64,000 nucleotides of DNA from Haliotis cracherodii (GCF_022045235.1 NW_027266270.1:25358001-25422000); one strand, 5' to 3'. Shown: positions 3,709-61,809, counted from the first letter of the stretch. Made by a program: numbers and translations. Notes: a model not told the origin generated them from the sequence alone.

Positions 3709-4625
3709 TTCTGACCGGATACGGAAATCATTCGGATACTTCGTTAACCAGGAACATATTATGTCACTTTCTAAATAATTCATTATTTTAAACCTAGTGA
3801 AAATGTCAAATGTAAAGTTTGAACAAACAGTCGACTAAGGCATTCACTTAAGTGTCCATATTGTATTACTTGGTGCGTAGTTGCTCGAAAATTGTGACAT
3901 AAATAAATATGCCCGGATTTTAAGCACAACAAAATGGCTGCCCCCGTTATTGGAGGCATGTGTTATGGTGTTATGTCATGTTTCTGAAATGAATCTTTTG
4001 ACAGCAAATTCGAGAAGCTGACATGTTTATTTTGGGTAATGAATTAATAGGTTGTCAATACAAGACGGAAATGGACGGTTGTTATCATCATGCAAACATG
4101 TTTTTCACATGTGCAAGGTTTCATTGATCCAGACTTCTTTTCTGTTTAAAAGCAAAGACTAAATTTTTGACAGTCACCAATATGCCAGTTAATTTGTGAA
4201 TGGGTCTTTTAGTAGTTTGACCTAAATGCTATATACAGTGGCCACATGCATGCCTCATTAAATAATTTTAAGTCCAATTACTTTTTTTCAAAAAGTTGCA
4301 TTCAGTAGAGAGAATGTGTATTTTTCAAAATTGTTATAATTACATTGTTTGTGAAAATGACACTTAGTAGGACTAAAATGTTGTTTCTATGCAGTTGGGA
4401 TATGTTGACATCCATCAACCAAATCAGCGACCCCCACCACCTTAGCCAATTAGTCTGCTCTTACAAAAAGCATGGGTTGATGAAGACAAATTCTGACCCA
4501 GATAGTTTCGTCCTAGTATGTATAACTCAACAGAACACTCTCCACTGAGCTCAATGTTCTATTTCAGATCTCCACCAAGAACTGAAGCACATCCAAATCC
4601 ATCCGATGAATCTATAAATCTGAAA
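3709..4625. promoter_or_regulatory. Bidirectional (head-to-head) promoter and 5' UTR region of CPSF3 and MTRF1L
   Basis: The divergent ATGs are about 0.92 kb apart. AAATGGCG/AAATGGCT YY1-like motifs occur at 3703-3710 (minus), 3931-3942 and 4623-4632. A plausible acceptor (CTATTTCAG) ends at 4567, upstream of the MTRF1L ATG. Confidence 0.6.
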
Positions 4626-7600
4626 ATGGCCGCCCCATTGAGCAAGTGTAACGCAACCTGTATAAAGCGCCTGTATTTCACATTATTGTCACATCAAAGA
4701 CAACTGTCCTGTCAAAGTCCAATGAAAAGTTGTTCAGATCAGAAATCTTTTTTTTCAAAGCAATATTTTCAAAATAGACAATACTCTGTTTATGGCAGTA
4801 TATCATTCAGTCAATATCGGGCAATATGTCAAGTGAAACATGTACTATCTATGGAAACTGACAGGATTGCAAATGATAACAAGAAGAAAGATTTGCAGTT
4901 GTTTGGACTAAACTACATAGAGCAAATTCTTGCAAGGAAATACCACTCTGTTACTCAAGGTGTACAGTGGTCGAGTAGGCTCAAGTGTGTTGTAGATGTA
5001 TGTGATGACAACACATGGAGAGCTGTAAACCACACGAGGAAATATGCTTCTAGAAGTGACCGATTCAACATTAACTGTAACCAACTTTACCATGACTATC
5101 TTACTAGCTTAGATACTGAGTATGACAATTTAGCTTCTGATCTCGCCGGCCAAAGTGTCAAATCTTCCAAGGACATGAATCTACGTCTGCAGAAGTTGTC
5201 TCCTGTGGTATCAGTCTTCAGGGACATTCAACAGAAATATTCCGAGGTGACGGAACTGGATAGCTTGTTATCAGGTACAGAGGTAGGGCAATGGACCTGA
5301 TGACATTGCATTTAAAATTTATATATGAAACTTAAAGTCTATAGTCAGCACCGATGACCAAGTGGTCTATAGTGCCACAATTTGTTGTGCAGTTGAATGC
5401 CATGGTCATATCAGGATCTATTGTTTGTGAGTTAGAGAGACACTCAGTTCCAGGAATGAGTTGTCATACTTTAAAATATATATCTACAAATTAAAAAAAA
5501 TAATCCAAAGCTTAATTTGAAAGCTGAGGCAATTTACACTTACCAAATCATTCTAGACTTGAGTTGGATTCATTTTTCTATTTATTCTCTGGGGTCTGGG
5601 AGACAGACAAGTCATGAGTTTGAATCCCAGATTTGCTCTCATTTTGATCATTTGTCAGAACCACTATGCCCATGTTCATGGGTTTCGCCTAATGGTAAAT
5701 GTCTATGACCTGCTTCACATGGACTTTTCTCCAACACTATACTTTGTATAACTGAAGTGAGGTTAATGAAAGGAGGGGGCTTATGTTTCTAGGTTTGTCA
5801 GCACCATACCCGTTCTCGTTGGTGGTAAACGTCTGAGACCTGCATCACTTTGGGCTTTCTTCCTACATTAAGCTGACATGCCGCGATATAACTGTAATAC
5901 TGTTTAAAAGTGACTTTAAACCCAACTCACTCACTCACTCACCAATGACAGGGATGTGCTCAATGTGGGCATGGTGGGTGAGTCTCTAGTTTTGGATTAT
6001 TTTATGCCTAGTGAGACTGGACATGGGACTGGTCATGGTTGGTTTGTTAGTTTGTTGTTTTACGGCGTACACAGCAATATTCCAGCTATATGACGGCGGT
6101 CTGTAAATAATGGGGTCTTCACCAGACAATCCAGTGACTGATATCATGAGCATCGATCTACGCAATTCGGATCGATGACATGCTTCAACAAAGTCAGCGA
6201 GCCTGACCACCCATGAAATAATGACTCTTCTATTTTTTCAAAGATACAAGTTATAAATTTGAAAATCATAATGATCATTTAGGGACTGATAATTTATTAT
6301 GGGGAGGGTGCGGGGGAGGAGTCATGAAGAATGTTTGCTTGTAATTAGGGTGGATATTGGGACATGAAAAAATGATACATACAATGGGGTCAGCAAAATA
6401 TGATACAGTCCTAAGACCAATCTCTCCCCCTACAAAATACATTACCAGTCCCTTGGGTAAAACAGTAAATAAAATAGTTTGATATGGCAAAATATAAATT
6501 GAAAAAATGTGCTGGTGGTATCACAAGTCTATTTACATTATTTCAAATTAATCCATCCTTAATCTTTGCAATTTTTCAGGTTATGACTGATTGAGGAGTC
6601 TAAATGTTTCGCTAATAACCATTTGGAGGAACACATGATCACTTTCACATTCCTCTATCCTTTCATTTCCTCAGGGTCTGATGATGCTGAGATGGTTACC
6701 ATGGCAACAAGAGAGAAGCAGGAACTGCTTGAAGATATTAAGGATAAGGAGAGTGGGGTATGGTAACCATGACAACTGCTGTTTGTGAATTGTAATGAGT
6801 TTGTATCTGTGGCATATACTACAACAGGACCACCTCTGTGGTAGAGCATTGTCCGTGGGGTTCGATCCCTGGCCGCGTCATACCAAAAGACGTTAAAAGA
6901 TGGTACTTGTTGTACCCTGTCTGGCGCTTGGCATTAAGGGGCTAAAACAAGGACTAGTCGGCTCGGAGTCAGTATACTGTGTCTGAGTGGGGTATTCATG
7001 TTAAACTGCGGCATGGTATCTCAGTGGGCTAGCACTATAAATCGGTATCAGTNNNNNNNNNNNNNNNNNNNNNNNNNNNNNNNNNNNNNNNNNNNNNNNN
7101 NNNNNNNNNNNNNNNNNNNNNNNNNNNNNNNNNNNNNNNNNNNNNNNNNNNNNNNNNNNNNNNNNNNNNNNNNNNNNNNNNNNNNNNNNNNNNNNNNNNN
7201 NNNNNNNNNNAGTGCAATAATCTTGGACGCGACGTTAAACCCAATTTCACCTCACCTGAACATGTGACAAGGGAAGGCATTACAACCCTGACAATGACCC
7301 ATTCTACCCATTGTGATAATCTTTTTGTCATGTTCAGGACGACTCCAAACAAAGTGACCGGCCAATCAAGAAGAACCTTAATTTGTAGAAAAAATTGTAC
7401 ATTGTATTTGTTTTTACTTTTTGTGTGTGTTAATTTCAGATGTTTTTAAACATTGCATTTTAAAATTGCAGTCAGTGGAAATATTTTATACATATTTGTA
7501 TGCGAGAAAACTCAAAATTAATGGGTAATGAAGATGACCTTTGCATATTTTACGTGACCCATGAAGATTCTGGGGTAGACTAGGTCTTCAGCAACCCATG

Positions 7601-18158: not shown

Positions 18159-18628
18159 ATGGCGTCCTCGTGTACCAGCATCGTCTTGCTCGTCTCCTGT
18201 CTAGCTTCACTGTCACAAGGTAACCCATAACGTCAGCCTTTTTAGGTGATCATATGCTGTATGTGATGTATTCCAATGTATACTATTTTTACATGAATAT
18301 CATTTAATGGTTTTGGTTCATTGTTGTTTTCAAGGTTACGTAAGATTGTTTTCGCGTCATGTAACCCTTTTTCAAAAGCGTAATATGGTCATGTTTATGT
18401 AGATAGTACCCGCATTTAACCACAGGCATGAACTTTTCAGTAAGGATTTTCAAATTGTTAAGTAAATGTTCTGCAAGTTTAGCTGACAAACATGTCGTCT
18501 AAGAAGTGAACGGGTGAATAGGTATGGCTCAACGCCGCATGAACAATCTTGCAGCTACATGAAGTCTCAAAGTAGGTGAGGTGAAATGGCGTTCAACGTC
18601 ACGTTCAAGATTATTGCACTTATACAAC

Positions 18629-18662
<34 letters not shown>

Positions 18663-21600
18663 GGGGGTGGGGTGGGGTGTTATCGTGCTAGCCCACAGAT
18701 ACCTTGCCGCAGTGTATCATGGGTAGCCCACTCGACCTGACAGACGCTCTACCCACAAGGCCAAGAATGCGAGCCCCACCCATAAGAATACTTCAAAACT
18801 TTCATTCTCACATTCCTCTATGTTGTGGCTTACTGTGTGAAATAGCCATTTGGAGAGCATGTTTTGACCATGTTATTGCGCAACAAATAACGATAAACGA
18901 AGACGGAGAAATCAAGTGACATTTTGTTCTTGGGTGTGAACATAATCATAACATTTGCTAAGGCCCTAAACAGTCACCTTCAGTCAAAGGTGTGTGCTCG
19001 TCAGCAAAAGTTGAATTCTATTTATGAGAAGTTCATTTTCTACCGGAAGCTTGAAAATACACCGTCCTTCTGCATCCCCTTTAGCTACTGTAACATTTTA
19101 TATATATTCCATTTTATTTTAAAATTCATAGGCTGAGAAACATCAAAACAAAAGCATAAATGCAAATATCAAGGCAGTCATTTGGAACTTACGTATATAT
19201 GAAGTATCAACTTTTCAAGAGTTCTTTGACTCTTTTTTATCAATTCTAAAAATTCCCTTTTCGTCGCTATTGGGCAAAACATAAAAGGTAAAAGGTAAAA
19301 AAAAGGCACCCCTAAAGCTTGACGGCTATTTGGTCAGTTCACCCCAAACGTCTGATACAACATCACCATCCTGATAAGCCGCGAAAATGTCAAGCCCACA
19401 AACACAGTACTGCTGAATACGTTATGCAAATACCGATGCTTTGTCAGATCTTGTCCTTGAGCCTGACATGACTGTCACACGTTGCACGCCGTTGCTCTTG
19501 ACATAAAAGGACGTTTACCTCGGTGCAATGCAGGCAGGTCAGGTGCGCTCGTGCTCACGCGCTGGAAAGGAAATGACATAATGGGGTATTGGGTCCGGCA
19601 TGAAACATGTCAATATTTAAAATGGTCGAGGAATGCTACGTGACAAATGGCGAGTAGAAATGGAGAATAATGGAATCAGATACCCTAGAAGAGAAGTCAG
19701 ATGCCCGACAGGGATGCGGCTGACTAACTGTTTGTAATTATAAACCTTCAGTGACGTAATCCTAAAGGTTTTATGTGGCCTTCTCGTACAAGAGAGAAAA
19801 CCGGTTTTAGATGTTTTGAAAGTCGCTCGTCAGAGATGTTTTGGCTACTGAACAGCACTCACTGCGATGCTAGCTCAAGGTCATGTGAGGAAGGATATTT
19901 TGTTTCTTTGTTGTTTAACGCCGCGCTTAGCAATCACGCAATAGGGACACGATGACATGCATCAACCAAGTCAGCGAGTCTGACAACCCGATCCTGTTAG
20001 TCACTTCTTACGACAAGCATAGTCGCCTTTTACGGCAAGCATGGGTGGCTGAAGATCCAGATGAGGAAGGATGGAAAATCCAGCAATAAATGTTACTTGT
20101 ATTTCAGTGGGGTCGAACTTCGTATACATTTTGAGGCACTGATAAATCTCTTCTTGAGGTGCATATTCGCCAGCAGGAATATAGTACGTCCATTTCTCAA
20201 GGCTCACCTATGTTGGAAATCTAAAATTGTTGAAAATGTTGTTTTGGATGGATTTTTCTTTAGGTTTTAGGTTTAAAAGTCGGATACCACACTTCCGCTA
20301 TTCCAGACCCATCGTGTTTACATTCTCAGCCAAACCGTCGGAGTCGTGTTTCATCTTGAACTTAAACAGAAAGAGCATGTGTTGTCATCCATGCTTTATA
20401 ATACAGCCTTTTGGATTTTAGTATTTCGTCGCCAATCTGACACAATCAAAAAAATTTTTGTTATTAATTATATATAATCCCCCTAACTAAATTCCACGCA
20501 TACCTTTTAGCTATACTTGCCCCCTCCACCCCTCTCTCGCCCTAACCCTTTTAATATTTGAATAGAGCAGATCAAATCAAGCCATGTCCCCATAGCCATT
20601 ATCTAAAGGATTTCCGCCTTCCCTCTTTATAGAGCATTTGGTTCCCCCTTTTCCCCTGTATAATGTTATCACGTGAGGAGGCTATTGTCTCCATGCCGTC
20701 TTACATGTGTTCAGCATGAAAAGCCCCCTTCTCGTATTCCCCCCACAGTGATTCTGGATCGGAAGAGCACCCCTTCAGTTCGTATTGTTATGTCTTGCCC
20801 CTTCTCGTATTCCCCCCACAGTGATTCTGGATCGGAAGAGCACCCCTTCAGTTCGTATTGTTATGTCTTGCCCCTTCTCGTATTCCCCCCACAGTGATTC
20901 TGGATCGGAAGAGCACCCCTTCAGTTCGTATTGTTATGTCTTGCCCCTTCTCGTATTCCCCCCACAGTGATTCTGGATCGGAAGAGCACCCCTTCAGTTC
21001 GTATTGTTATGTCTTGCCCCTTCTCGTATTCCCCCCACAGTGATTCTGGATCGAAAGAGCACCCCTTCAGTTCGTATTGTTATGTCTTGCCCCTTCTCGT
21101 ATTCCCCCCACAGTAATTCTGGATCGGAAGAGCACCCCTTCAGTTCGTATTGTTATGTCTTGCCCCTTCTCGTATTCCCCCCACAGGGATTCTGGATCGG
21201 AAGAGCACCCCTTCAGTTCGTATTGTTATGTCTTGCCCCTTCTCGTATTCCCCCCACAGTGATTCTGGATCGGAAGAGCACCCCTTCAGTTCGTATTGTT
21301 ATGTCTTGCCCCTTCTCGTATTCCCCCCACAGTGATTCTGGATCGGAAGAGCACCCCTTCAGTTCGTATTGTTATGTCTTGCCCCTTCTCGTATTCCCCC
21401 CACAGTGATTCTGGATCGGAAGAGCACCCCTTCAGTTCGTATTGTTATGTCTTGCCCCTTCTCGTATTCCCCCCACAGTGATTCTGGATCGGAAGAGCAC
21501 CCCTTCAGTTCGTATTGTTATGTCTTGCCCCTTCTCGTATTCCCCCCACAGTGATTCTGGATCGAAAGAGCACCCCTTCAGTTCGTATTGTTATGTCTTG

Positions 21601-24600
21601 CCCCTTCTCGTATTCCCCCCACAGTAATTCTGGATCGGAAGAGCACCCCTTCAGTTCGTATTGTTATGTCTTGCCCCATCTCGTATTCCCCCCACAGTAA
21701 TTCTGGATCGGAAGAGCACCCCTTCAGTTCGTATTGTTATGTCTTGCCCCTTCTCGTATTCCCCCCACAGGGATTCCGGGTCGGAAGAGCACCCCTTCAG
21801 TTCTTATTGTTATCAGAGACCACATGATATTATATGGTCTCTGTTGTTATGTCTTGCCCCTCGTCCATCTGTCGTAAACCTTGTCAGTATTTTGTTGATT
21901 AATAAAATACTAACCAAACTATGTCATGCATGAATGGATTGTCACATCACAGCTGCATGTATTATATAAATAAACTGCAAGTGATTCCTCGGCATATGAT
22001 TGGCTAACCCACAAGTCCATGTAACTAATATTCTCCTCAATTATAAACCTATTCATTGGGATCTATAGGCATTTTAACCTATTGTGAGGTTTTACTTTCC
22101 AGGCGGGTTAAATCTCATAAACAGGGACGTTGTAATGTCCCAGGGATTTTATTAATATAACTTCCGTTCAGATTGTAACATGTAATGAAATGTTAAATCA
22201 AATGACAAATGTTTTCTTTATATTCCCGGGTATCGAACTCGCAATCTTTATATCTGTAGCCCAGTGAGTGTACCACGAGGCTACAGAGGTGTTGATAAGT
22301 CTCACTGGTTTTTAGAATGTCCTTTTCAAGATCCGTACGCCAGCAACAGATATTCTAGGCACGTTTCCTAAGGTTCATGGAAAGTATGTTCGAAACATAA
22401 AAATGTTGATAAATGTTGTTTTATGTTTCTTTTTTCGGTTTATAAGTATGGAAAAACTTTTTCCCCTTGGTTTTTCCCTCTCCCCAGGGCATGCTCTGTC
22501 TACCAAACCTGGTGAGCGTGACTTGGATGATGCATACCATCGTATCCCAATTGCGTGGATCGATGCTCATGCTGTTATTCACTGGGTTCTCTGGACCAGG
22601 CTCGATAATTTACAAACCGCCGTCATGTAGCTGGAATACTGCTGAGTGCAGCGTTAAACAAACAAACCATAAAACAAAAACCGATATGTGCACATTGCGT
22701 AAATCCGCTACGCACTAATTTTTAAGTAAATGCAAAACAATTTGAAATCAAGTCGTATAATAAAATATTGTTTTCCTATAATACTATGTAATTTCTCAAT
22801 CTCAACCCTTACTCTAGTGAGCTGTCACTGGACTGTTTGCAAGGACAACTTCAACAATCAGACATGTATGACCACTGTCAAGGCCGCCCTGAATGATAAA
22901 ACCTTGTTTTGGTTTGGCACTAAGTATATGGAGATGTGTCCAAATGGTCCAGATTTTACCCAAAAGTGTACCAATCTTCGACCAAACATGAATGACTCCA
23001 TTATGAGCCGAATGTTCACCGGAAGTAACGTCACGACGGACTCGATAACCTCCATCATGAACATCACCTACCCCCGACCGCTGGAACGTAAGTAGACACC
23101 TGACGCAACCTTCACCTTGGAAGTTTGGGTTCTAACACCTTAAAAGTTTCAAACATATTTTTTTTATTAATTCAGTAATGTTTTATTGTTTATTGTTTAA
23201 CATCGCACTCAGCAATATTTCACCTTTATGACGGCGGTCTGTAAATAATCGAGAGATTGACAAAATGGCCCATCAACATCGATCTGTTCAGTTGGGATAC
23301 AGTGGTCAGTCTCACTGACTTGGTTGATGCATGTCATCGTATCCCAATTGCTTGGATCGATTCTCATGATATCTATCACTGGATTGTCCAAACTCGATTA
23401 TTTACAGACCGCCGTCAAAAAGCTGAAATATTGCTGAGTGTGGCGTTAAACAACAAACAAGCAAACAAACAAAATGTTGCTAAAAACGTCGTCAAATCAT
23501 GTTCACGACACATGTCATGATCACACCCACCCTTCTGTCGTCCTAGGCATATACACAGGATGCGGGGCAGAGATTAAACAGACTTCCAGGTCCACTTCCT
23601 TCAAAATTGACCCTCTCAACCCTCACTACAGGACGTCAGTTGATTACAGTGGCATGCCGGACGTCTCGTGGTCAGCGAAGCCCGACGTCAAATACACCGT
23701 AGTGTACTACGACACTGGCTATTTCATTGTCCACGGCATCTACGTCAACGCCGACGGTGGAAACATAACCATGGGCGAGGTAGGAAGATACGTACTTTGA
23801 GATCATTGATCACGCCGTCATATCCATGAAATACTGTTTAACGACGGTGATAAACCAAACTCACTTCCTCATTGATGAAGCTCGTGGAGCGATTTATATA
23901 CAACGGCCATAGTACCATGACACGCTGTGATAAACATGAAATAATGTTCGATGCTGTGTTAAACTAAACCCACCCACTCAACAATAAAGTCGTTGTCCGT
24001 GGTGTGGGCATGGGGAAAGTCGTTTTCAATGGTGTGAGCATGGAGAAAGTCGTCCGTGGTGTGAGCATGGGGAAAGTCGTTGTCCATGGCGGGAGGATAG
24101 GTAGAGTCGTTGTCCATAGCGGGAGCATGGGGAAAGTCGTTGTCCATGGCGGGAGCATGGGGAAAGTGGTTGTCCATGGTGTGAGCATGCGGAAAGTCGT
24201 TGTCCATGGCGGGAGTATGGGGAATGTCGTTGTCCGTGGCGGGAGCATGGGGAAAGTCGTTGTCCATGGCGGGAGCATGGGGAAAGTCGTTGTCCATGGT
24301 GTGAGCATGGGGAAAGTAGTTTGTCGTGGTGTGAGCATGGGTAAACTTGTTGGTCGTGGTGAGAGCATGGGTAAAGTCGTTGGTCGTGGTGTGAGCATGG
24401 GTAAAGTAGTTGGTCGTGGTGTGAGCATGGGTAAAGTCGCTGATCGTGGTGAGAGCATGGTTAAAGTCGTTGGTCGTGGTGAGAGCATGGGTAAAGTAGT
24501 TGGTCGTGGTGTGAGCATGGGTAAAGTCTCTGATCGTGGTGAGAGCATTGGTAAAGTCGCTGGTCGTGGTGTGAGCATGGTTAAAGTAGTTGGTCGTGGT

Positions 24601-27600
24601 GAGAGCATGGTTAAAGTAGTTGGTCGTGATGTGAGCATGGTTAAAGTAGTTGGTCGTGGTGTGAGCATGGGTAAAGTAGTTGGTCGTGGTGTGAGCATGG
24701 GTAAAGTCGTTGGTCGTGGTGTGAGCATGGGTAAAGTAGTTGGTCGTGGTGTGAGCATGGGTAAAGTCGCTTATCGTGGTGAGAGCATGGTTAAAGTCGT
24801 TGGTCGTGGTGTGAGCATGGTTAAAGTAGTTGGTCGTGATGTGAGCATGGGTAAAGTCGCTGATCGTGGTGAGAGCATTAGTAAAGTCGCTGGTCGTGGT
24901 GAGAGCATGGTTAAAGTAGTTGGTCGTGATGTGAGCATGGTTAAAGTAGTTGGTCGTGGTGTGAGCATGGTTAAAGTAATTGGTCGTGGTGAGAGCATGG
25001 GTAAAGTAGTTGGTCGTGGTGTGAGCATGGTTAAAGTAGTTGGTCGTGGTGTGAACATGGGTAAAGTCGCTGATCGTGGTGAGAACATGGGTAAAGCAGT
25101 TGGTCGTGGTGAGAGCATGGTTAAAGTAGTTGGTCGTGGTGTGAGCATGGGTAAAGTCACTGGTCGTGGTGTGAGCATGGTTAAAGTAGTTGGTCGTGGT
25201 GAGAGCATGGTTAAAGTAGTTGGTCGTGATGTGAGCATGGTTAAAGTAGTTGGTCGTGGTGTGAACATGGGTAAAGTAGTTGGTCGTGATGTGAGCATGG
25301 TTAAAGTAGTTGGTCGTGATGTGAGCATGGTTAAAGTAGTTGGTCATGGTGTGAGCATGGGTAAAGTAGTTGGTCGTGGTGAGAGCATGGTTAAAGTAGT
25401 TGGTCGTGGTGTGAACATGGGTAAAGTCGCTGATCGTGGTGAGAACATGGTTAAAGTAGTTGGTCGTGGTGAGAGCATGGTTAAAGTAGTTGGTCGTGAT
25501 GTGAGCATGGTTAAAGTAGTTGGTCATGGTGTGAGCATGGGTAAAGTCGTTGGTCGTGGTGAGAGCATGGGTAAAGTCGTTGGTCGTGGTGTGAGCATGG
25601 TTAAAGTAGTTGGTCGTGGTGTGAACATGGGTAAAGTCGCTGATCGTGGTGAGAACATGGGTAAAGTAGTTGGTCGTGGTGAGAGCATGGTTAAAGTAGT
25701 TGGTCGTGGTGTGAGCATGGGTAAAGTCACTGGTCGTGGTGTGAGCATGGTTAAAGTAGTTGGTCGTGGTGAGAACATGGTTAAAGTAGTTGGTCGTGGT
25801 GTGAGCATGGTTAAAGTAGTTGGTCGTGATGTGAGCATGGTTAAAGTAGTTGGTCATGGTGTGAGCATGGGTAAAGTCGTTGGTCGTGGTGAGAGCATGG
25901 GTAAAGTAGTTGGTCGTGGTGTGAGCATGGTTAAAGTAATTGGTCGTGGTGTGAACATGGGTAAAGTCGCTGATCGTGGTGAGAACATGGGTAAAGTAGT
26001 TGGTCGTGGTGAGAGCATGGTTAAAGTAGTTGGTCGTGGTCTGAGCATGGGTAAAGTAGTTGGTCGTGGTGAGAGCATGGTTAAAGTCGCTGGTCGTGGT
26101 GTGAGCATGGTTAAAGTAGTTGGTCGTGGTGAGAGCATGGTTAAAGTAGTTGGTCGTGATGAGAGCATGGTTAAAGTCGTTGGTCGTGATGTGAGCATGG
26201 TTAAAGTAGTTGGTCGTGGTGAGAGCATGGGTAAACTTGTTGGTCGTGGTGAGAACATGGGTAAAGTAGTTGGTCGTGGTGAGAGCATGGTTAAAGTAGT
26301 TGGTCGTTGTGTGAGCATGGTTAAAGTAGTTGGTCGTGGTGTGAACATGGGTAAACTTGTTGGTCGTGGTGTGAGCATGGGTAGAGTCGTTGGTCGTGGT
26401 GTGAGCATGGGTAAAGTAGTTGGTCGTGGTGTGAGCATGGTTAAAGTAGTTGGTCGTGGTGTGAGCATGGTTAAAGTAGTTGGTCGTGGTGTTAGCATGG
26501 TTAAAGTAGTTGGTCGTGGTGTGAGCATGGGTAAACTTGTTGGTCGTGGTGTGAGCATGGGTAGAGTCGTTGGTCGTGGTGTGAACATGGGTAAAGTCGT
26601 TGTCCGTGGTGTGAACATGGGTAAACTTGTTGGTCGTGGTGAGAGCATGGGTAAAGTCGTTGGTCGTGGTGTGAGCATGGGTAGAGTCGTTGTCCGTGGT
26701 GTGAACATGGGTAAACTTGTTGGTCGTGGTGAGAGCATGGGTAAAGTCGTTGGTCGTGGTGTGAACATGGGTAAAGTCGTTGTCCGTGGTGTGAACATGG
26801 GTAAACTTGTTGGTCGTGGTGAGAGCATGGGTAGAGTCGTTGGTCGTGGTGAGAGCATGGGTAAAGTCGTTGGTCGTGGTGTGAGCATGGGTAGAGTCGT
26901 TGTCCGTGGTGTGAACATGGTTAAAGTAATTGGTCGTGGTGTGAGCATGGTTAAAGTAGTTGGTCGTTGTGTGAGCATGGTTAAAGTAGTTGGTCGTGGT
27001 GTGAACATGGGTAAACTTGTTGGTCGTGGTGTGAGCATGGGTAGAGTCGTTGGTCGTGGTGTGAGCATGGGTAAAGTAGTTGGTCGTGGTGTGAGCATGG
27101 TTAAAGTAGTTGGTCGTGGTGTGAGCATGGTTAAAGTAGTTGGTCGTGGTGTTAGCATGGTTAAAGTAGTTGGTCGTGGTGTGAGCATGGGTAAACTTGT
27201 TGGTCGTGGTGTGAGCATGGGTAGAGTCGTTGGTCGTGGTGTGAACATGGGTAAAGTCGTTGTCCGTGGTGTGAGCATGGGTAGAGTCGTTGTCCGTGGT
27301 GTGAACATGGGTAAAGTCGTTGGTCGTGGTGTGAGCATGGGTAGAGTCGTTGTCCGTGGTGTGAACATGGGTAAACTTGTTGGTCGTGGTGAGAGCATGG
27401 GTAAAGTCGTTGGTCGTGGTGTGAACATGGGTAAAGTCGTTGTCCGTGGTGTGAACATGGGTAAACTTGTTGGTCGTGGTGAGAGCATGGGTAGAGTCGT
27501 TGGTCGTGGTGAGAGCATGGGTAAAGTCGTTGGTCGTGGTGTGAGCATGGGTAGAGTCGTTGTCCGTGGTGTGAACATGGGTAAACTTGTTGGTCGTGGT

Positions 27601-30600
27601 GTGAGCATGGGTAGAGTCGTTGGTCGTGGTGAGAGCATGGGTAAAGTCGTTGTCCGTGGTGTGAGCATGGGTAAAGTCCTTGTCCGTGGTGTGAACATGG
27701 GTAAACTTGTTGGTCGTGGTGAGAGCATGGGTAAAGTCGTTGTCCGTGGTGTGAACATGGGTAAAGTCCTTGTCCGTTGTGTGAACATGGGTAAAGTCGT
27801 TGTCCGTGGTGTGAGCATGGGTAAAGTAGTTGGTCGTGGTGTGAGCATGGGTAAACTTGTTGGTCGTGGTGTGAGCATGGGTAAACTTGTTGGTCGTGGT
27901 GAGAGCATGGGTAAAGTCGTTGTCCGTGGTGTGAACATGGGTAAAGTCGTTGTCCGTGGTGAGAGCATGGGTAAAGTCGTTGCCCGTGGTGTGACCATGG
28001 GTAAAGTCGCAGATCGTGGTGTGTAAACATGGATTGAGTCGCTGATCGTGGTGTGAGCATTGGTAAAGTCGTTGTCCATGGTGTGAGCATGGGTAAAGTC
28101 GTTGGTCGTGGTGTGAACATGGGTAAAGTCGTTGTCCGTGGTGTGAACATGGGTAAAGTCGTTGTCCGTGGTGTGAACATGGGTAAAGTCGTTGTCCGTG
28201 GTGTGAGCATGGGTAAAGTAGTTGGTCGTGGTGTGAGCATGGGTAAACTTGTTGGTCGTGGTGTGAGCATGGGTAAACTTGTTGGTCGTGGTGAGAGCAT
28301 GGGTAAAGTCGTTGTCCGTGGTGTGAACATGGGTAAAGTCGTTGTCCGTGGTGAGAGCATGGGTAAAGTCGTTGTCCGTGGTGAGAGCATGGGTAAAGTC
28401 GTTGCCCGTGGTGTGACCATGGGTAAAGTCGCAGATCGTGGTGTGTAAGCATGGATTAAGTCGCTGATCGTGGTGTGAGCATTGGTAAAGTCGTTGTCCA
28501 TGGTGTGAGCATGGGTAAAGTCGTTGGTCGTGGTGTGAACATGGGTAAAGTCGTTGTCCGTGGTGTGAACATGGGTAAAGTCGTTGCCCGTGGTGTGACC
28601 ATGGGTAAAGTCGCAGATCGTGGTGTGTAAGCATGGATTAAGTCGCTGATCGTGGTGTGAGCATGGGTAAAGTCGTTGTCCATGGTGTGAGCATGGGTAA
28701 AGTCGTTGCCCGTGGTGTGACCATGGGTAAAGTCGCAGATCGTGGTGTGTAAGCATGGATTAAGTCGCTGATCGAGGTGTGAGCATGGATAAAGTCGTTG
28801 GTCGGGGTGTGAGCATGGATAAAGTCGTTGGTCGGGGTGTGAGCACGGGTAAAGCTGTTGTCCATGATGTGAGCATGGGGAAAATCGTTGGCCGTGCTGT
28901 GGGCATGGGTAAAGTCGTTGGCTGTGGTGTAAGCATTGTGAAGATGCTGGTTTTGGTATGAGAATGGATGCAGACGATGGCCTTGATCTGAGTACTGTTC
29001 GAAGACTCTAATATTACATATGCTGTAAATAAATGCTCTGTTGAACCAGGCTGTCAAACCCCACAGCGGTCCCCTGAACACCCTCGATCGGCTAAACATC
29101 TATGTCTGGGTGGTCTTCGAGCAAACAAACGACATCCAAGTCGAAGAAATGAAACAATACATCAACGAAACCAATTCGTTTATGAATCCCCTGTTTATGC
29201 ACGAGTTCATACAGACATATGGTCTTCAAGGTAAACTCAATGTTTGAATACCGTTGCACTACTCACATGTGTCTTCTACAAACAGTCCAAATGACAACGT
29301 GGACATGAGGTTGTTGTTTTTCAAAATGGTTTAAATCAATCAACTAAACTGTAGACATTGACTCTATAAAAGAAGATATATAATGCGTAACTAGGACTTT
29401 CTCAAAGGCCGCGAAGATCCATATTGTATAGATCCCCTCAATTTGTTAACGTATTCACGTGTGTGGATGATTGCTTTCCTTACACTACCCAGAGACCATA
29501 TACCCTGCTCTTATCCTCTTCTCATGCTTACCAATCAATAATGCTTCCCTGCAACCCCCACACCCAGCACGCCCTAATCCAATAATGTTTCCCTGCAGCC
29601 CCCCACCTACCACGCCCCCCTCCAATAATGCTGACCTGCACCACCACCCCACACCCAGCACGCCCTAATCCAATAATGCTTCCCTGCAGCCCCCCACCTA
29701 CCACGCCCCCCTCCAATAATACTTCCCTGCAACCACCCCCTCTCCACCCCCACCCCCACCCCCACCCCACTGCTTCCCCCTCTGTATCATTACCAACTCT
29801 CCAAACCATTATTTCTATCAGCTTCATGTTACTTTTCAGGTCCCGTCAGCTTCGACATCGTGCGCTCCTATGGCGACGACTACGCCGCTGTGATGATGAG
29901 AGACAGGGGTGATACAAACAGGTGTCCCTACTTCCACCAAAAACGTGAGCCATCTATATCACATGCCGGCAAACCTCTAACCACTAGTTTAATTAGGGGA
30001 TATCTCTGTTGTTTTGACACCTCGGTTTTCTCTAACGCGGCTGGAATGAAAGTTGAAAGTTGACATTTGCAAGCTTTATTATTTACAATTTACCCATGCA
30101 CCGATCTCATGGCAGTGGAGGAGGTATACACCCGTGTTAGATAGTGGCAAAACGTGAAACAGACCAGAATTGGTTATTCGATGGTGAAGTAATTCATACG
30201 GGTATCATTGCAGTGTCGGGGCAGCTGTTGCCAGTCTGGTAACGTTTTCATAATGTTTATAATTTGTAGGTCAAATCCAATTTTCAAGAGTATAATTTCT
30301 GTTGCCCGGCAGTTTATGCATGGTTTTGTGACCCAAGGGGCATTGGTGGGCCGGTCGTCTAAGGTGCCGCGATTCGATGGCTGCCAGAAACCTATGTTCG
30401 TGGGTTCGAATCCCAGAAACGTCCTGATTATGTTTCTGGGTTTGCTAGCACCATAACCGCGCTCACTGGTTTCACCAAAGCTGTAAACATCTAAGATCTC
30501 ACACATCTAGTTGACAGGTCATGATATGTGACATACTGTCACTCACCTTTATGCAGCCCCCTGAGTGCAGCTCATTCTTAGATTCCACGATGGCTACGGT

Positions 30601-31577
30601 TGGAACACTGCTAAAAGAATGATAAAACACAGCTCACACACTCACGCCTTTACAGAGAGGTACTTAGCACGCCTCATATCATAACAAGCGTAGGAAGAAT
30701 TCCGTTCTGAAATATTTTCTTCTTCTTCCAGGACTCCAAGAGCACGTGGACAGCCATGGCGGTCTGACCTTCAACCTGTCGTCTGCTGAGGCCGGGATCT
30801 CTATTGACCTGCACTTTATGACCCCGGACATGCCCTTCCCCTTCTGCTGTTCTGAAATGAAGACTGGGTGAGATTGATTTACAGTTAACTATACAAACTT
30901 GTAACAATCCGTTTCTTTTGTTTTCCTTGACACGTGTAGAATATGTGAAGCTGAGTCTCAGTTTCTAACATTATGCTAAAAGTGACGTATGACCAAATCC
31001 ACTCACTCCATCACTGCGATTGGTATTATTGAAGAGAGCCTTGTTAATCATCATCATCATCATCTTCATCATCATCATTAGGCACGTAAGAAACCTGTCA
31101 TTGTGGGTACAAGTCCCGATGCGCCCGATGCGCCCCGATAATGTTCCTAGATTTGACAGCACCATATCAAGCTCGTGGTAAACGTCTGAAACCTGCATCA
31201 GTTCGGGTTTTCCTCCCATATTAAACCGACACGCTGTTGACTCTGGAATACACTGACACTGTTCACAGCAACGTTGAACCGAACTCACTTTTATCATCAT
31301 AACCCTCACACTCATTTAATATAAGAAGAAGTTTATTCATGTTAAAGACCATATGATTTTCAGAATAAACAGCACACATAGATAAGTTGCTGATTAAATG
31401 TATTATTGTGATAATCATTGTTGTTGATATCATTTTATTGTGACAATCATTTTTGTTGATATTATCATCATCATCATTACATCATCATCATCATCATTAT
31501 TATTATTAATTATATATTCAGTATTTATTTCTGTGTCATCATCATCTTCTTAATCACTGATAAATTAAGTTATTATT

Positions 31578-31619
<42 letters not shown>

Positions 31620-34600
31620 TTGTTGTTGTTGTTATATATTCATTATTTACTTATGTGTCATCATTATCTTCTTAATCACTGATAAATATTGTCTCATTCA
31701 GCGCCGCCAACGTTCATGTCAATTATAAGTCCACTGGGGAGATCATGGCCGCCAAAGTGAGAGCAAAGCCAATGGTGCACTTTGTGACAAGAAACACCTC
31801 CGCCCCTGCCAGAACTACCCTGCAAGGTAGTAAATGTCCTGTCAGGCTTCCCAACCAACATGTGTATGGCTGCAATGACACTCAGCCATTGCTAGATCCC
31901 ACGTGGATTATATACTTCAGTTTCATTTATAAAAGAGTGTAAGGTATAAACACACAATGCCATTTTAGAAAGTGGTCAGATGTAACAAATGGTATGTTTG
32001 GGATAACACTTTCTTAATAAAGTTCAGATTCTCGTACTTAAAGTAATAATAGTAAGGTAATTTAAATCCAACGTTTCTAAGACAGCACACCATTTAGGAT
32101 TCCGGGTTCGAAGAGGCCCTCACCAACCAAGGCGAAACCGCATTATCGGTGGTTTGAGAAGGGAGCTAACTCAGTTTGCCTAATCGAAAGTTCGAGGTGG
32201 GCCCACATTCGAAACTAAACGCACTTGTTGTTGAGAATATGTACAATGTAAACTAACCCGCATTACGAACTGTTATTTTGTCTATTAAAAATAAGTATTA
32301 TGACTTAATAATTGGATTAGAATGTACAAATGCGATGATACTACAGCAGAACTCACTTCTATGAACATCGCCAAACTAGGTCGTGGGGTCATTAATATTC
32401 ATGAGTTATTCCTTTTATGGAACAAGTTCTCGGAAAAGTTTGAGGCTTGTATCATGACTGTCATGTCCGAGATCAATTTAAGTGTAGACATATTTCCTGC
32501 GGCAAACTTATGATCAGATTGATGTGTTATACTGGAAAAAGTAGAATGAGTAGTTTTGCCTCTGTAAATTTAATTTGAAGTAGATCGAAGTTTCTTGCTT
32601 TGTAGCCTATTTTTGCAAAACTAGTGTGGTCAGCTATGATGACGTTATTCAAACTTCAAGGACTTTGTGTGCATTTATAAAGATATTTCCCATCAATATT
32701 ACAAAATGAGAATTATATATAATGTCACAAACCCATGCAAATGTGATCCCACTAGTCTAAATGACTCAGTCAACCCAATGAAGCCCAGCGATTTACAAAT
32801 GTGGGCCCACCTGTTTCGATCACTGTAAGACGGGAACAATGTGGGCCCACATTTTAGAAAATGGTTATAATTAAGCCAGGCTAATGAAGCTTAGCGATTT
32901 ATAAATGTGGTCCCTCCTGTTGCAATCACTATGACGGAAGAACGTCTTCCTACTAGGAGATATACAAAAGTGGGCCCACTTGTTTCGATCACCATATATG
33001 GCGGGAACAATGTGGGCCCACATTTGAGAAAATGATTATCAATATTTAAGTAGAATTTCGCGATTAGTAAATGTGGTCCCTCCTGTTGCAATCAATATGA
33101 CGGAAGAACGTCTGCCCACATTTAGGAATTGATTATCAGAACTAATTAAACAACCTAACGAAGCTAGGTTATATACAAATGTGGGCCCACTTGTTTCGAT
33201 CACCATATATGACGGGAACAATGTGGGCCCACATTTTAGAAAATGGTTATCAGCACTAAACCAATCTAAGAAGATGTACGGATGGAAACATAAATATATA
33301 AAGCATTCAAACATTTAATTAAGAATACGTTTTACCTTAGGGATAAGCTGGGCATTTAATAGCTAGACCAATAACGTACGGCGTGACTGACGCCATTTCT
33401 CGCAAATACGAAAACAACGGAGATAGCTCCCGTCTGAATTTAGAGTGACCTCCCTTTCCCAATATGAACCACTTATAATGCGGTTTCGCCCCAACCAATG
33501 CTGTTCGTAATAATCGACTTAATGGATTGGGTGGTCAACAAACCGAGAGAGCGTGGATCGTTGCTCATAATTTCAATCACTGGCCACATTCGGTTATTTA
33601 CAGACCGCCGTCATGTAGCTGGAGTTGATTTCATATTTGCTATTCTCGCCCAACAGGTCAGTTCTTCACCTTGATGCTGGTCAACCCAACAAAGGAGTTG
33701 AATACATCAACCCCCAACACTGACGTACATTGGCTCGTTGTCAACATCAACGCCGATGACGTCGCTAACGGTGACGTCGTCGTCGAATACATGCCTCCGA
33801 TGCCAAGTGCAACAAAGCGGATGTATCTGGCCCTTCTGTACAAGCAAGCGAACAGAACTGACCAAGTGAAGAATATCACAGGCCTGCTCGGTTCTGGGTG
33901 CCCTCAGAACACTAAGTACGAGACGCTACTGTGGAGATTTCGTCGCTATTTGACTAAAATAACGCCGATTTGACGTTCTTTTTTAAATTGTCGAGATAGT
34001 TGTGTTTGCCTTTTTATGAAGAACGTATTTTGTCGTTGATAGTCTTGCATTCAATTCTATATTTACGAAATTAAGTACCTGGTAAATATCGGACATATTG
34101 ACATGTTAGACACCTAGACAGGAGCTGTCTCCATTTCATTATAATACCTTGTACATGATGAATTTAATACCCCACAAGAAAACGTCACCAGTCATCAATA
34201 CGGCGGCAACAAATTATCATGTCCATATTAAAATCTTAAACAAATTAAATTTGCAATAAAATAATTTTCACAAAATATTCATCAACAGAGGGATGTTGAA
34301 AACAAAATGAACAATAATGGCTACAATTCTTTCCCTGATTTTCATCTTGCATCATGTTTTGACTGCTATGCGATTACCTCCCTTACATAATGAATTTGAT
34401 AAATACAGTGTGTCTACAGTAAGTGAGCGCTGTAGCCTATTCAGGCTACATAATCTCAACTAATTTTCATATCTCTACTGTTTCATATCCCCGCTCTCTT
34501 TCATATCTCCACTCTGTTTCATATCTTTGCAATGTTTTATATCCCCGCTCTGTTTCATATCTCCACTTTGTTTCATATCTCCACTCTTTTTTATATCTCC

Positions 34601-36210
34601 AGTTTCTTTAATATCCCCGTTCTGTTTCATATCCCTGTTCTGTTTAATAACCCCGCTTTGTTTCATATCTCCGCTCTGTTTCATATCTCTGCTCTGTTTC
34701 ATATTGCCGCTCTGTTTCATATCTAAAATTAGTTTCATATCTCCACTCTACTTCAAATCCCGATCTGTTTCATGTCTCCACTTTGTTTCATATCCCCGCT
34801 CTGTTTCATATCTCCACTCTGTTTCATATCCCCGCTCTGTTTCATATCTCCACTCTGTTTCATATCTCCACTTGGTTTCATATCCCCGCTCTGTTTCATA
34901 TCTCCACTCTGTTTCATATCTCCACTCTGTTTCATATCTCCACTGTTTCATATCCTCGATCTGTTTCATATCTCCACTTTGTTTCATATCCCCACTCTGT
35001 TTCATATCTCCACTCTGTTTCAGATGGCCACTCTGTTTCATATACCCGTTCTGTTTCATATTTCCTCTTTGTTTTATATCCCCGCTCTGTTTCATATCTC
35101 CACCCGGGGCTATCGGGTAGCCTAGTGGTTAAAGCCTTCGCTCGTCACGCCGAAGACCCGGGTTCGATTCCTGACGTGGGTACAATGTGTGAAGCCCATT
35201 TCCGGTGTCATATATCCGCTCTCTTTCCATATGTAGAATACCTGCCTTTCTGTTGATGAATTTACGACCCAGAAGCTTTGTTGTAAAATTCCAAACACAT
35301 ATCTGTTTCATATCTCCGCTCTGTTTCATATCTCTGCTCTGTTTCATATCTCCGCTCTCTTTCATGTCTCCACTCTATTTCATATCTCTGCTTTGTTAAG
35401 TATCTCCGCTCCATTTCATATCTCTGCTCTGTTTCATATCTCCGCTCTGTTTCATATCTCTGCTCTGTTTCATATCTCCGCTCTGTTTCATATCTCCGCT
35501 CTGTTTCATATCTCTGCTCTGTTTCATATCTCCACTCTGTTTCATATCTCCGCTCTGTTTCATATCTCCGCTCTGTTTCATATCTCTGCTCTGTTTCATA
35601 TCTCCGCTCTGTTTCATATCTCCCCTCTGTTTCATATCTCCGCTCTGTTTCATATCTCCACTCTGTTTCATATCTCCGCTCTGTTTCATATCTCCGCTCT
35701 GTTTCATATCTCCGCTCTGTTTCATATCTCCGCTCTGTTTCATATTTCCACTCTGTTTAATATCCCCGCTCTGTTTCATATCCCCGTCTTGGTTTCATAT
35801 CCCCGATCTGTTTCATATCCCCGATCTGTTTGATATATCCGCTCTGTTTCCATATGTAGAACTTCAGTACCTGCCTTTCTTTGATGATTTTAAGACCCAG
35901 AAGCATTGTTGTGAAAATTCCAAACACATTATCAAACCCTCTTCTGTTTAGGTGCAAGTTCCAGGTGAAAAACTATGTCATGAAGAACAGCCTCGTTCTG
36001 AGTGGACTCCGCCAGATGGACGTTAAACCCGACCACTACAGCAAACACCAGGAAGTGAAGAACGGGATGAGATCCGAGAATGAAGCATGTGAAGGCATGG
36101 CTGGTTACAGAAATCCGTGCCCAACAGGAACTGGGCTTCCTCTGACATCCTCCATGGTCGCCATCTATGCCATGGCGTTGCTGGCTGTTGTCTGTCAAAA
36201 GGCTTTTTGA
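18159..36210 (+). CDS. Secreted or GPI-anchored protein with two tandem PEBP (phosphatidylethanolamine-binding/RKIP-like) domains, copy A, 9 exons, 542 aa
   Basis: Exons 18159-18219, 22818-23087, 23547-23779, 29050-29230, 29840-29944, 30732-30867, 31702-31826, 33657-33915 and 35952-36210 are all GT-AG, phase-compatible and give 1629 nt open. Signal peptide MASSCTSIVLLVSCLASLSQVSC. Domain 1: PDVSW..YTVVYYD..HGIYVN..YVWVVFEQ..YGLQGPVS..DDY. Domain 2: FTLMLVNP..HWLVVNI..EYMPPMP..YLALLYKQ. Hydrophobic C-terminal tail SSMVAIYAMALLAVVCQKAF. Confidence 0.88.
20723..21812. repeat. 73-bp tandem repeat, about 15 units, intron 1 of copy A only
   Basis: Unit GCCCCTTCTCGTATTCCCCCCACAGTGATTCTGGATCGGAAGAGCACCCCTTCAGTTCGTATTGTTATGTCTT. 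A single unit is present in copy B (about 48187-48280). Confidence 0.95.
23985..28935. repeat. 30-bp minisatellite, about 165 units, intron 3 of copy A
   Basis: Consensus GTGAGCATGGGTAAAGTCGTTGGTCGTGGT, with occasional 32-bp variants from 28021 onward. Confidence 0.97.
29535..29785. repeat. C-rich degenerate tandem repeat in intron 4 (also at about 51648-51940)
   Basis: Recurrent CCAATAATGCT(TC/GA)CCTGCA..CCCC units. Confidence 0.75.
32131..33490. mobile_element. 1.36-kb non-autonomous DNA transposon with GG..CC termini and an 8-bp TSD (Merlin-like), copy A intron 7 only
   Basis: TIR GGCGAAACCGCATTAT at both ends. TSD CCAACCAA (32123-32130, 33491-33498). Empty site in copy B near 53690. Internal AATGTGGGCCCAC repeats. 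Confidence 0.9.
34465..35855. repeat. 18-bp minisatellite in intron 8 of copy A, interrupted by a SINE fragment (about 35106-35207)
   Basis: Unit CTCTGTTTCATATCTCCG. It produces the MKQSGD and FHISAL ORFs. A shorter array is in copy B at about 54712-55150. Confidence 0.93.
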
Positions 36211-53000: not shown

Positions 53001-53215
53001 GGTCTGACCTTCAACCTGTCGTCTGCTGAGGCCGGGATCTCTATTGACCTGCACTTTATGACCCCGGACATGTCTTTCCCCTTCTGCTGTTCTGCAGTGA
53101 AGACTGGGTGAGATTGATTTACAGTTAACTATACAAACTTGTAACAATCCGTTTCTTTTGTTTTCTTTGACATAAATTATTGATAAATTAAGTCTTCTTC
53201 TTCTTCTTCTTCTTC

Positions 53216-53258
<43 letters not shown>

Positions 53259-55505: not shown

Positions 55506-56022
55506 AATTCTGCGATTTTATATTCGTCTTTTAACTAACAAGACTGCTTGCATTTAAAGGAGAGACCAGGCTCCCTGGCCTATTTCTAAACGTTGAAATT
55601 CGTGCGGAATAAAATTATGATACCTTGTCTCTGTGTACTTAGTACCTACTTGATGGCAATTCACCATAAATTTGAGTTAGCCCTTGGTTGGAAATGATTT
55701 GTATCAAACTTGATATGACTTCCTACTGGCCTGATCCTATTCTTCCTTTTACACTGCTAATAACAACTGACAAGATGCTTTGTGTTAATCAGAATCCATA
55801 TTATCACGTTATCACAAGCCTATATAGCGTGCCTGGACATATTTTAAAGGTATCGTCAGTAGATCAAGAGTCATTCACAAATCCACAAATTGACCGTAGC
55901 ACTCCGCCAGGCTAAAGACAACGTTTCGCTATTACGTAATCGTATAGTTACAGTGCTCGCTTTGATGAGGGTGAATTTCTTATTTTCAAATGTTTCCGGA
56001 AGTGTCATTTTTTTTCTGTTTA

Positions 56023-61763: not shown

Positions 61764-61809
61764 ATGGCAGCCCTGATGAAAATATCCCTCGTATCTCTTC
61801 TAGTTTCAG
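61764..61809 (+). CDS. Probable first (signal-peptide) exon of another secreted-protein gene continuing beyond the window
   Basis: TATATAA at 61701-61707, good start context AACATGG, peptide MAALMKISLVSLLVS, and a strong phase-1 donor CAG/GTGAGT. No downstream exon was recognised in the window. Confidence 0.6.

Follow-up and report, generated by a model that had tools for sequence, protein, structure and literature searches.

A 64,000-nt stretch of DNA from the black abalone Haliotis cracherodii, hereafter the window, contains two complete genes and the start of a third, from a tandem cluster of at least three genes, all in one orientation, that encode proteins with two PEBP domains in series. 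The two complete ones, copy A (18159-36210) and copy B (46465-55505), are a real, spliced and expressed gene pair, and their products belong to the PEBP superfamily by fold and by profile while failing both its motif definitions and its Pfam threshold. The pair encodes 542-aa precursors made of a predicted signal peptide and two divergent PEBP domains in a confidently packed tandem. On balance, we consider it probable that these give rise to an ectoprotein that is held at the membrane by a glycosylphosphatidylinositol (GPI) anchor and may work by surface contacts. The sequences are already deposited but unnamed and unstudied; what is new is the architecture, built on a known PEBP fold. All coordinates are those of the window and all genes of the family lie on its + strand.

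Two PEBP Folds in One Chain

The spliced product of copy A is letter for letter identical to protein P0122, that is RefSeq XP_071100213.1, a 542-aa entry described as "uncharacterized protein [Haliotis cracherodii]". Full-length searches and the fold prediction were performed on P0122, and the exons joined by script from the window coordinates were employed for counting and comparison. A family alignment of 26 sequences, with P0122 in its first row (A1), was used as input for AlphaFold, which returned a model with two PEBP folds (mean predicted local distance difference test score 83.6, predicted template modelling score 0.77). In particular, VIA-align superimposed FT, TFL1, Tm16 and RKIP on the first domain (D1, approximately model residues 25-273), with a Z of 17.5 for FT, a root-mean-square deviation (rmsd) of 1.9 Å and 151 of 162 residues aligned, and a Z of 15.7 for RKIP. 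The second domain (D2, approximately residues 262-498) was matched by mL38 (Z 16.8) and by a PEBP of P. vivax (Z 14.3). Moreover, the matches listed by Foldseek, down to an E-value of about 2e-3, are all PEBP-fold proteins.

At the level of profiles, hhalign connects D1 (A1 residues 111-285) to D2 (286-505) with a probability of 99.8% and an E-value of 5.8e-28 over 158 columns, and the two domains are the homologous but divergent halves of an internal duplication. The A1 profile matches the solved PEBPs CG7054, Tm16 and PEBP1 over D2, with E-values from 1e-16 to 1e-13, and the profile-level homology of D1 to PEBPs follows from its hhalign link to D2. Model, structural alignments, Foldseek and the D1-D2 comparison thus bear out the tandem PEBP-like units that a previous reading of the window, made from the sequence only, had proposed.

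The Pfam family PF01161 is less sensitive to these proteins. Specifically, against a gathering score of 24 bits, P0122 and P0128, the copy B product, reach 21.7 and 19.1 bits, respectively, in D2 only, whereas relatives pass the threshold in Ostrea (63 bits), Pecten (62 bits, two stretches) and the annelid Owenia (53 bits, two stretches). Exon by exon, exon 8 alone gives a weak PBP match (Table 1), the other exons being blank or hit by chance matches.

The sequence-only reading had also described a Cys-rich N-terminal segment. Such a stretch is present, but probably not as a separate segment, given that residues 21-110 fall within the span aligned to PEBPs (RKIP aligns on residues 30-273). A separate N-terminal Cys-rich domain is therefore disfavoured, as the structural alignments cover this segment as D1, and in the model these residues seem to belong to D1, as its N-terminal portion, and not to a module of their own.

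Transcription and Splicing of the Gene Pair

A run search returned 17 small runs that contain 9-15% of the words of window positions 51100-55550, where the exon share is 24%. The contigs of four of these runs, from four studies, were compared with exons 4-9 of copy B. Intron-less contigs show five joints, all GT..AG and exactly at the modelled exon borders (junctions 4/5 to 8/9; positions in Table 1), which is where spliced sequence had been predicted. Junction 3/4 is supported by a loose contig end ahead of exon 4 that continues into the end of exon 3; for junctions 1/2 and 2/3, the support comes from the GT-AG sites, the phase and the identity with the RefSeq model.

Transcripts of copy A can be told apart from those of copy B. 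In exons 4 to 9, a 1517-nt contig (depth about 470) departs from the copy B sequence at 3, 7, 6, 8, 4 and 2 letters, and these numbers are the A-B difference counts; since, in addition, every listed difference is the copy A base, the contig represents copy A mRNA. Other runs contain B-like, allelic or orthologous forms.

As a side observation, the summed contig depth reaches very high values, up to about 250,000, in three intronic bins of copy B (52143-52291, 52590-52738 and 53782-53930); this holds for each of the four runs, and many loose ends with a common consensus occur there. These are probably transcribed interspersed repeats and not part of the gene.

Apparent Stepwise Decay of the Pocket Motifs

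Pocket motif registers were derived from HMMER alignments to CG7054 and Tm16 and from hhalign, and columns were counted over the 26 members of A1. In D1 of copy A the DPDxP site reads D166-T-G, followed by a deletion of about ten residues and by His173, and GxHRY has become RLNIY; in D2 the same sites read N380-P-T-K-E, ahead of the invariant His395, and TKRMY. In other words, the His of GxHRY is replaced by Asn in D1 and by Arg in D2, and its Tyr is kept in both. The pocket His equivalent to RKIP His86 corresponds to His173 (21 of 26 members) and His395 (26 of 26); Tyr206 and Tyr427 are both retained in copy A, and 24 of 26 members have Tyr or Phe at the latter position. All of the altered motifs listed by the sequence-only reading (DTG and NPT, RLNIY and TKRMY), with the persisting His and Tyr, are found in copy A.

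The idea of remodelled pockets holds insofar as the motifs are degenerate in both domains, but the two domains differ in the spread and apparent age of the loss. The D1 pattern is family-wide and old, with Asp in 26 of 26 members, Gly in 22 and Asn at the GxHRY His position in 22. In D2, the first Asp of DPDxP is found in 22 of 26 and the second in 8, and Asn at the first position is limited to the four H. cracherodii/H. rufescens sequences; a GxHRY-type His is kept by 9 of 26, namely bivalves, Lottia, Owenia and one unnamed transcript-assembly sequence. The canonical pocket appears to have been lost early in D1, and later in D2, only in some lineages including that of abalone copies A and B.

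An alternative to a function through surface contacts is that D2 still works as a classical PEBP pocket for an extracellular anionic, lipid or nucleotide ligand, with D1 as its structural partner. The near-invariance of the His395 and Tyr427 positions and the DPDVP-like and HxY motifs of the bivalve, Lottia and Owenia members would suit such a role. Likewise, D2 is the slower half between copies A and B, with a ratio of non-synonymous to synonymous substitution rates (dN/dS) of 0.52 and 98.5-99.2% nucleotide identity in exons 8-9. In A and B themselves, however, Asn stands for the first Asp, Thr for the second, Glu for the Pro and Arg-Met for His-Arg, and the Pfam PBP score stays under the gathering value. 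A working D2 pocket is considered an unlikely alternative.

Cysteines, Sequons and Termini

Copy A contains 16 Cys, two in the signal peptide, one in the tail (C538) and 13 in between. The 12 Cys previously assigned to the mature chain are therefore one short of the total between signal peptide and tail; 12 is nevertheless the number conserved across the family, C23 being specific to the H. cracherodii/H. rufescens group. Invariant or near-invariant positions in A1 are C28, C37, W52, G54, Y57, C61, C71, C116, D166, N178, Q213, D261, C277, C322, C323, R349, H395, C452, C458, C503 and C513. The twelve conserved Cys would allow six disulfides, and the joint absence of C452 and C458 from the Ostrea member suggests that these two pair. 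The Cys-bearing motifs noted before (GCG, FCC, RCP and ACE) are all present in copy A, as is PCP, and the 11 N-x-S/T sequons reported for it were counted again; copy B has 10.

A hydrophobic N-terminus of about 20 residues was recognized by inspection in the window proteins and in most relatives. It is of the secretory type and agrees with the signal peptide claimed for copy A, the cleavage of which can be presumed. At the opposite end, the tail that follows the last conserved Cys measures 27-40 residues in most members and is composed of a small-residue stretch, a spacer and a hydrophobic run of 13-17 residues; in copy A, small residues and a spacer precede 14-17 hydrophobic residues and a four-residue end, with no cytoplasmic part. 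A GPI attachment signal is typically laid out as a small residue (the omega site), a short spacer and a hydrophobic end of 12-20 residues, with no cytoplasmic domain. By a Kyte-Doolittle window heuristic, the hydrophobic run ends 1-9 residues short of the C-terminus in 22 of 26 members and is preceded by residues rich in Ser, Gly, Ala and Asn. The hydrophobic C-terminus after small residues that had been called GPI-like is thus present, and a GPI-type layout is predicted for most of the family. Taken together, these features lead us to infer secretion, N-glycosylation, disulfide bonding and GPI anchoring of copies A and B.

The same protein might do without a GPI anchor. It would then either span the membrane by a helix, leaving four residues in the cytoplasm, or be shed or secreted. 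The model has a helix at residues 523-541, the Bradybaena pair P0030/P0120 has no hydrophobic tail, and P0104 and P0032 carry longer polar ends, of more than 9 residues, after the hydrophobic run, all of which would fit such a form. On the other hand, a run of only about 14-17 hydrophobic residues, with no flanking basic cluster and no cytoplasmic domain, is short for a membrane-spanning anchor, and the small-residue stretch and spacer ahead of it in most members are the usual layout of a GPI signal and not that of a type I anchor. A non-GPI form is accordingly considered rather improbable.

Rate of Change

Copies A and B differ at 40 of 542 aa (92.6% identity). Their synonymous divergence (dS) is 0.042 and their non-synonymous divergence (dN) 0.035, giving a dN/dS of 0.84 over the whole chain and of 1.31 in D1, while the tail is identical; the underlying counts are small (14.5 synonymous and 43.5 non-synonymous changes) and the ratios are raw values with no significance test. 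Intron divergence outside satellites amounts to 0.039, close to dN, which indicates that non-synonymous sites changed about as fast as neutral ones. Despite this divergence, neither reading frame is broken, and every splice site and every conserved residue is kept.

Between species, H. cracherodii A and B share 87-93% identity with the H. rufescens pair and 65-69% with the genes of H. rubra and H. asinina (65-67% for H. asinina), whereas for the same species pairs the neighbouring paralog shows 97% and 84% (84% for H. asinina). Assuming orthology, the A/B lineage would be evolving two to three times faster than its neighbour, a rate that both relaxed constraint and diversifying selection fit.

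Divergence between A and B is uneven along the gene, as noted for 29975-30932 versus 52221-53172 and for introns 4-5 versus introns 6-8. It amounts to 2.0-2.6% in introns 4-5 and to 5-10% in introns 6-8, with exons 8-9 identical at 98.5-99.2%, which hints at gene-conversion tracts between the copies. In addition, the identity matrix of the H. cracherodii and H. rufescens copies is not cleanly orthologous.

Proposed Mode of Action

In the model that we favour, the protein encoded by copy A or copy B would enter the secretory pathway and become disulfide-bonded and N-glycosylated. A GPI anchor would then replace its C-terminal signal, with attachment to a small residue at about G516-S523, and the two PEBP domains would end up as an ectoprotein tethered to the outside of the cell membrane. 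The anion pocket of D1 would have been dismantled family-wide, with D-x-G in place of DPDxP, a loop of about ten residues gone and Asn for the GxHRY His, and that of D2 degraded in the abalone A/B lineage, with Asn for the first Asp and Arg for the His. Given this state of the pockets, the function would most likely be exerted through protein or glycan surface contacts, that is by binding or recognition, instead of by holding a phosphoryl ligand, although this is said with low certainty. Fast sequence turnover and repeated tandem duplication would fit a quickly changing partner.

A broader version of this hypothesis, which we advance only tentatively, is that of an ancient protostome family of GPI-anchored, disulfide-locked double-PEBP proteins, shared by molluscs, annelids and possibly nematodes (as C56G2.4), in which the PEBP fold was turned from an intracellular phospho-ligand binder into a surface recognition module. 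The unusual speed of abalone A and B would then reflect contact with a partner that evolves along with them, for example a pathogen, a gamete protein or a self/non-self cue. The sequence-only reading had offered recognition, protease inhibition and mucus or gamete biology as conceivable roles.

Some PEBPs inhibit proteases, as yeast Tfs1 does with carboxypeptidase Y and mouse PEBP with serine proteases, and a membrane-tethered protease inhibitor would be a further explanation. The structure of the carboxypeptidase Y inhibitor (1wpx_B) aligns to D1 with a Z of 15.5 over 168 residues, and an extracellular location would suit the control of proteases. Nevertheless, this match is no better than those of other PEBPs and, at 12% identity, is one of fold only; no reactive-site feature was identified in the abalone proteins, and inhibition appears a doubtful assignment. 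Lastly, it is very improbable that one or both copies are young duplicates drifting to loss of function, transcribed but unconstrained, as their dN/dS and the closeness of dN to intron divergence might suggest, considering that the 58 substitutions have broken neither of the two 1629-nt frames and none of the 16 splice sites, that the 12 family-conserved Cys and the invariant residues are present in both, that copy A mRNA is abundant in at least one run, and that H. rufescens also retains two copies of 539-542 aa.

Several observations weigh against the GPI-anchored, surface-contact model. The runs are labelled only 'RNA? (a guess)', and their RNA nature is deduced from the intron-less contigs. 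The disulfides are read from conserved Cys and the state of the pockets from motif registers, whereas anchor and cleavage sites are placed by inspection and by the hydrophobicity heuristic. Moreover, the n-region of the signal peptide carries no positive charge, and the Bradybaena pair, P0104 and P0032 depart from the GPI-type tail. Relaxed constraint would account equally well for a dN/dS near 1 between A and B. Finally, some ligand binding in D2 is possible, as this half is the more conserved of the two and retains both His395 and Tyr427.

Members of the Family

When exon 8 alone was searched with phmmer against 1.84 billion representatives, 113 proteins were retrieved at E<=0.001, many of them of about 530-585 aa and matched twice by the query. 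Cluster look-ups named relatives in Haliotis asinina, H. rubra, Lottia, Littorina, Babylonia, Aplysia, Lymnaea, Bradybaena, Ostrea, Pecten, Saccostrea, Mercenaria, Mactra and Owenia. Over all searches, relatives of the same architecture, about 530-585 aa long, were found in seven gastropod genera besides Haliotis, in several bivalves and in this annelid. P0122 was retrieved by a word search with the H. rubra protein, and a later word search added relatives, likewise unnamed, from the freshwater mussels Potamilus and Sinanodonta.

The relatives are labelled 'uncharacterized' or 'hypothetical', with a few auto-named PEBP, 'C56G2.4-like' or 'odorant-binding protein A5'. In agreement with the suspicion that no named family has this architecture, none named or characterised was found in database and literature searches, the latter of which returned no paper on a double-PEBP family. 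The novelty claimed for the protein is therefore partial: the family is unstudied, but it was already in the databases, where RefSeq contains both exact models and where many molluscs, as well as Owenia, have annotated homologues of about 540 aa.

Nematode relatives are a hint. H. asinina and Babylonia relatives carry the NCBI name 'C56G2.4-like', and the nearest ESM Atlas cluster is mostly nematode (536 aa, score 0.95, 219 of 256 features, PBP in 53% of members); the link to C. elegans C56G2.4 rests on this name and this cluster, and a common architecture (D1, D2, Cys and tail) would be conjectural. A homologue search with the 26-sequence profile retrieved only two proteins, and one with the Ostrea member only bivalve and gastropod relatives, with no nematode sequence among them; the literature library that was searched contained no paper mentioning C56G2.4.

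Two variants of the architecture were also noticed. Two rock-oyster gene models of 619-622 aa, P0010 and P0134 (Saccostrea echinata and S. cucullata), have a cysteine-rich domain of the Frizzled type (Pfam Fz, 74 bits) ahead of the double-PEBP unit. The fusion may be genuine, in which case it would point to the binding of extracellular ligands, or the gene model may be a merged one. In P0013 (Mercenaria, 950 aa) and P0119 (Littorina, 1004 aa), two complete units stand in series, each with the N-terminal part, D1 and D2; they are probably tandem duplicates merged by annotation, and suggest that tandem duplication is common for this family in molluscs.

Comparison with Known PEBPs

PEBPs have been studied almost wholly as small cytosolic regulators, such as RKIP and florigen, or as single-domain secreted antigens. 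The canonical members (RKIP/PEBP1, plant FT/TFL1/CEN, Drosophila CG7054, Trichuris Tm16) share the fold of both abalone domains (Z 15-17.5, rmsd 1.9-2.8 Å, 150-170 residues), profile homology at E 1e-16, the His equivalent to RKIP His86 and the GxHRY Tyr. They are, however, single-domain proteins of about 170-190 aa, mostly cytosolic and free of disulfides, whereas the abalone proteins combine two tandem domains of about 225-250 aa with a signal peptide, 12 conserved Cys, many sequons, a GPI-type end and degenerate DPDxP and GxHRY motifs.

Secreted or signal-peptide-bearing PEBPs, namely Onchocerca Ov-16, Toxocara TES-26, Drosophila 'odorant-binding protein A5' and mammalian PEBP4, bring the fold into the secretory pathway. 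To our knowledge, these are single-domain PEBPs whose pocket motif is intact and which have neither a tandem repeat nor a GPI-type signal. An H. rubra relative, a fragment, is auto-named 'putative odorant-binding protein A5' by NCBI.

Other chains with several PEBP units exist in the tick Ornithodoros (418 aa), the wasp Eretmocerus (398 aa), the mite Medioppia (633 aa, four units) and the chiton Liolophura (404 aa), often with a signal-like N-terminus. In contrast to the abalone-type family, they show no match to the N-terminal Cys-rich part (the FWFG region), their units match the D2-type profile only, or partly, and they total 2 Cys in tick and wasp and 7-8 in mite and chiton, versus 13-16. 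Among the structures, mL38 matches D2 best, over 197 residues and with the N-terminal extension included. It is an intracellular mitoribosomal protein with a single PEBP domain, and the resemblance goes no further than a common fold that has a long extension at its N-terminus.

The family would thus place two altered-pocket PEBP folds, presumably disulfide-bonded, probably on the outer cell surface, and its conservation across molluscs and at least one annelid would imply a second, extracellular role for the PEBP fold. It also offers a natural comparison series, in which the D1 pocket is lost in all members and the D2 pocket is kept in bivalves, Lottia and Owenia and lost in most other gastropods examined. 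Abalone biology gains what may be a surface glycoprotein that evolves fast and is duplicated in tandem, and a search for its partner could be undertaken. For annotation the benefit is small, as about a dozen 'uncharacterized protein' entries become tandem PEBP-fold proteins with a GPI-type signal.

Gene Models and Organization of the Cluster

Copy A was rebuilt manually from AG acceptors and GT donors. Nine exons, every site GT-AG, join in compatible phases (1, 1, 0, 1, 1, 2, 1, 2) into 1629 nt, that is 542 aa and a TGA; start, end and length are those of the nine in-phase exons already outlined by the sequence-only reading. Comparing the larger exons with the window, first by tblastn and then by blastn, revealed a collinear duplicate at about 45.2-56.0 kb. 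This copy B, about 10 kb downstream of A, has nine exons of the same lengths, all GT-AG and with the frame intact, and its product is P0128 (XP_071100214.1). The NCBI pipeline arrived independently at identical models for both copies. The third gene of the cluster encodes P0123 (XP_071099728.1), of 544 aa and 32% identical to A and B, whose residues 1-19 are found by tblastn at 61764-61820 with 89% identity.

Table 1. Exons of the double-PEBP genes in the 64,000-nt window.
Feature	Position	Strand	Content and evidence
Copy A exon 1	18159-18219	+	Start ATG 18159; hydrophobic h-region, predicted signal peptide (residues 1-20 and first base of codon 21); GT donor 18220; same as XP_071100213.1 N-terminus
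Copy A exon 2	22818-23087	+	N-terminal part of D1: conserved C28, C37, FWFG motif, C61, C71, four sequons; AG/GT sites, phase, family conservation, within RKIP/FT-aligned model span
Copy A exon 3	23547-23779	+	D1 core: GCG (C116), degenerate DPDxP site D166-T-G, His173; RNA loose end shows exon 3 end joined to exon 4
Copy A exon 4	29050-29230	+	D1 strand with RLNIY (degenerate GxHRY), next helix; homologous copy B junction 4/5 in spliced contigs
Copy A exon 5	29840-29944	+	D1 C-terminal helix, NRCP motif (C277); junctions 4/5 and 5/6 in spliced contigs
Copy A exon 6	30732-30867	+	D2 start, FCC (C322, C323); junctions in spliced contigs
Copy A exon 7	31702-31826	+	D2 N-terminal strands; junctions in spliced contigs
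Copy A exon 8	33657-33915	+	D2 core: NPTKE (degenerate DPDxP), invariant His395, TKRMY, C452; Pfam PBP E 5e-4, 20.8 bits
Copy A exon 9	35952-36210	+	D2 end (C458, C503, C513); predicted GPI-type signal ~36121-36207; TGA 36208-36210; junction 8/9 in spliced contigs
Copy B exon 1	46465-46525	+	100% identical to copy A exon 1
Copy B exon 2	48950-49219	+	95.6% nucleotide identity to A
Copy B exon 3	49630-49862	+	93.1% nucleotide identity to A
Copy B exon 4	51167-51347	+	Joint 51347/51998, GT..AG, in 3 runs
Copy B exon 5	51998-52102	+	Joint 52102/52972, GT..AG
Copy B exon 6	52972-53107	+	Joint 53107/53342, GT..AG, in 3 runs
Copy B exon 7	53342-53466	+	Joint 53466/53859, GT..AG, in 3 runs
Copy B exon 8	53859-54117	+	Joint 54117/55247, GT..AG, in 3 runs
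Copy B exon 9 and stop codon	55247-55505	+	Contigs extend into the 3' untranslated region beyond 55547
Third paralog exon 1 (predicted signal peptide)	61764-61809	+	ATG 61764; GT donor 61810; phase as exon 1 of A and B; remainder beyond window end

Upstream of the cluster, the window contains a run of N at 7053-7210 and a 260-aa ATG-initiated open reading frame at 4518-5300 (+); the latter has no Pfam match, and Pfam searches of three long open reading frames in the upstream region (1-17.5 kb) gave none.

The 18-kb span of copy A is due to large satellites in its introns, with a 73-bp unit repeated 15 times (20725-21813), a 30-bp unit repeated about 165 times (23985-28936) and an 18-bp unit repeated 76 times (34478-35855). 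Copy B holds much shorter 30-bp and 18-bp arrays (49958-51032 and 54725-55150), and the expansion of these arrays makes up a large part of the difference in gene size between the two copies (18 kb versus 9 kb). The 30-bp array of copy A also yields long spurious open reading frames on both strands.

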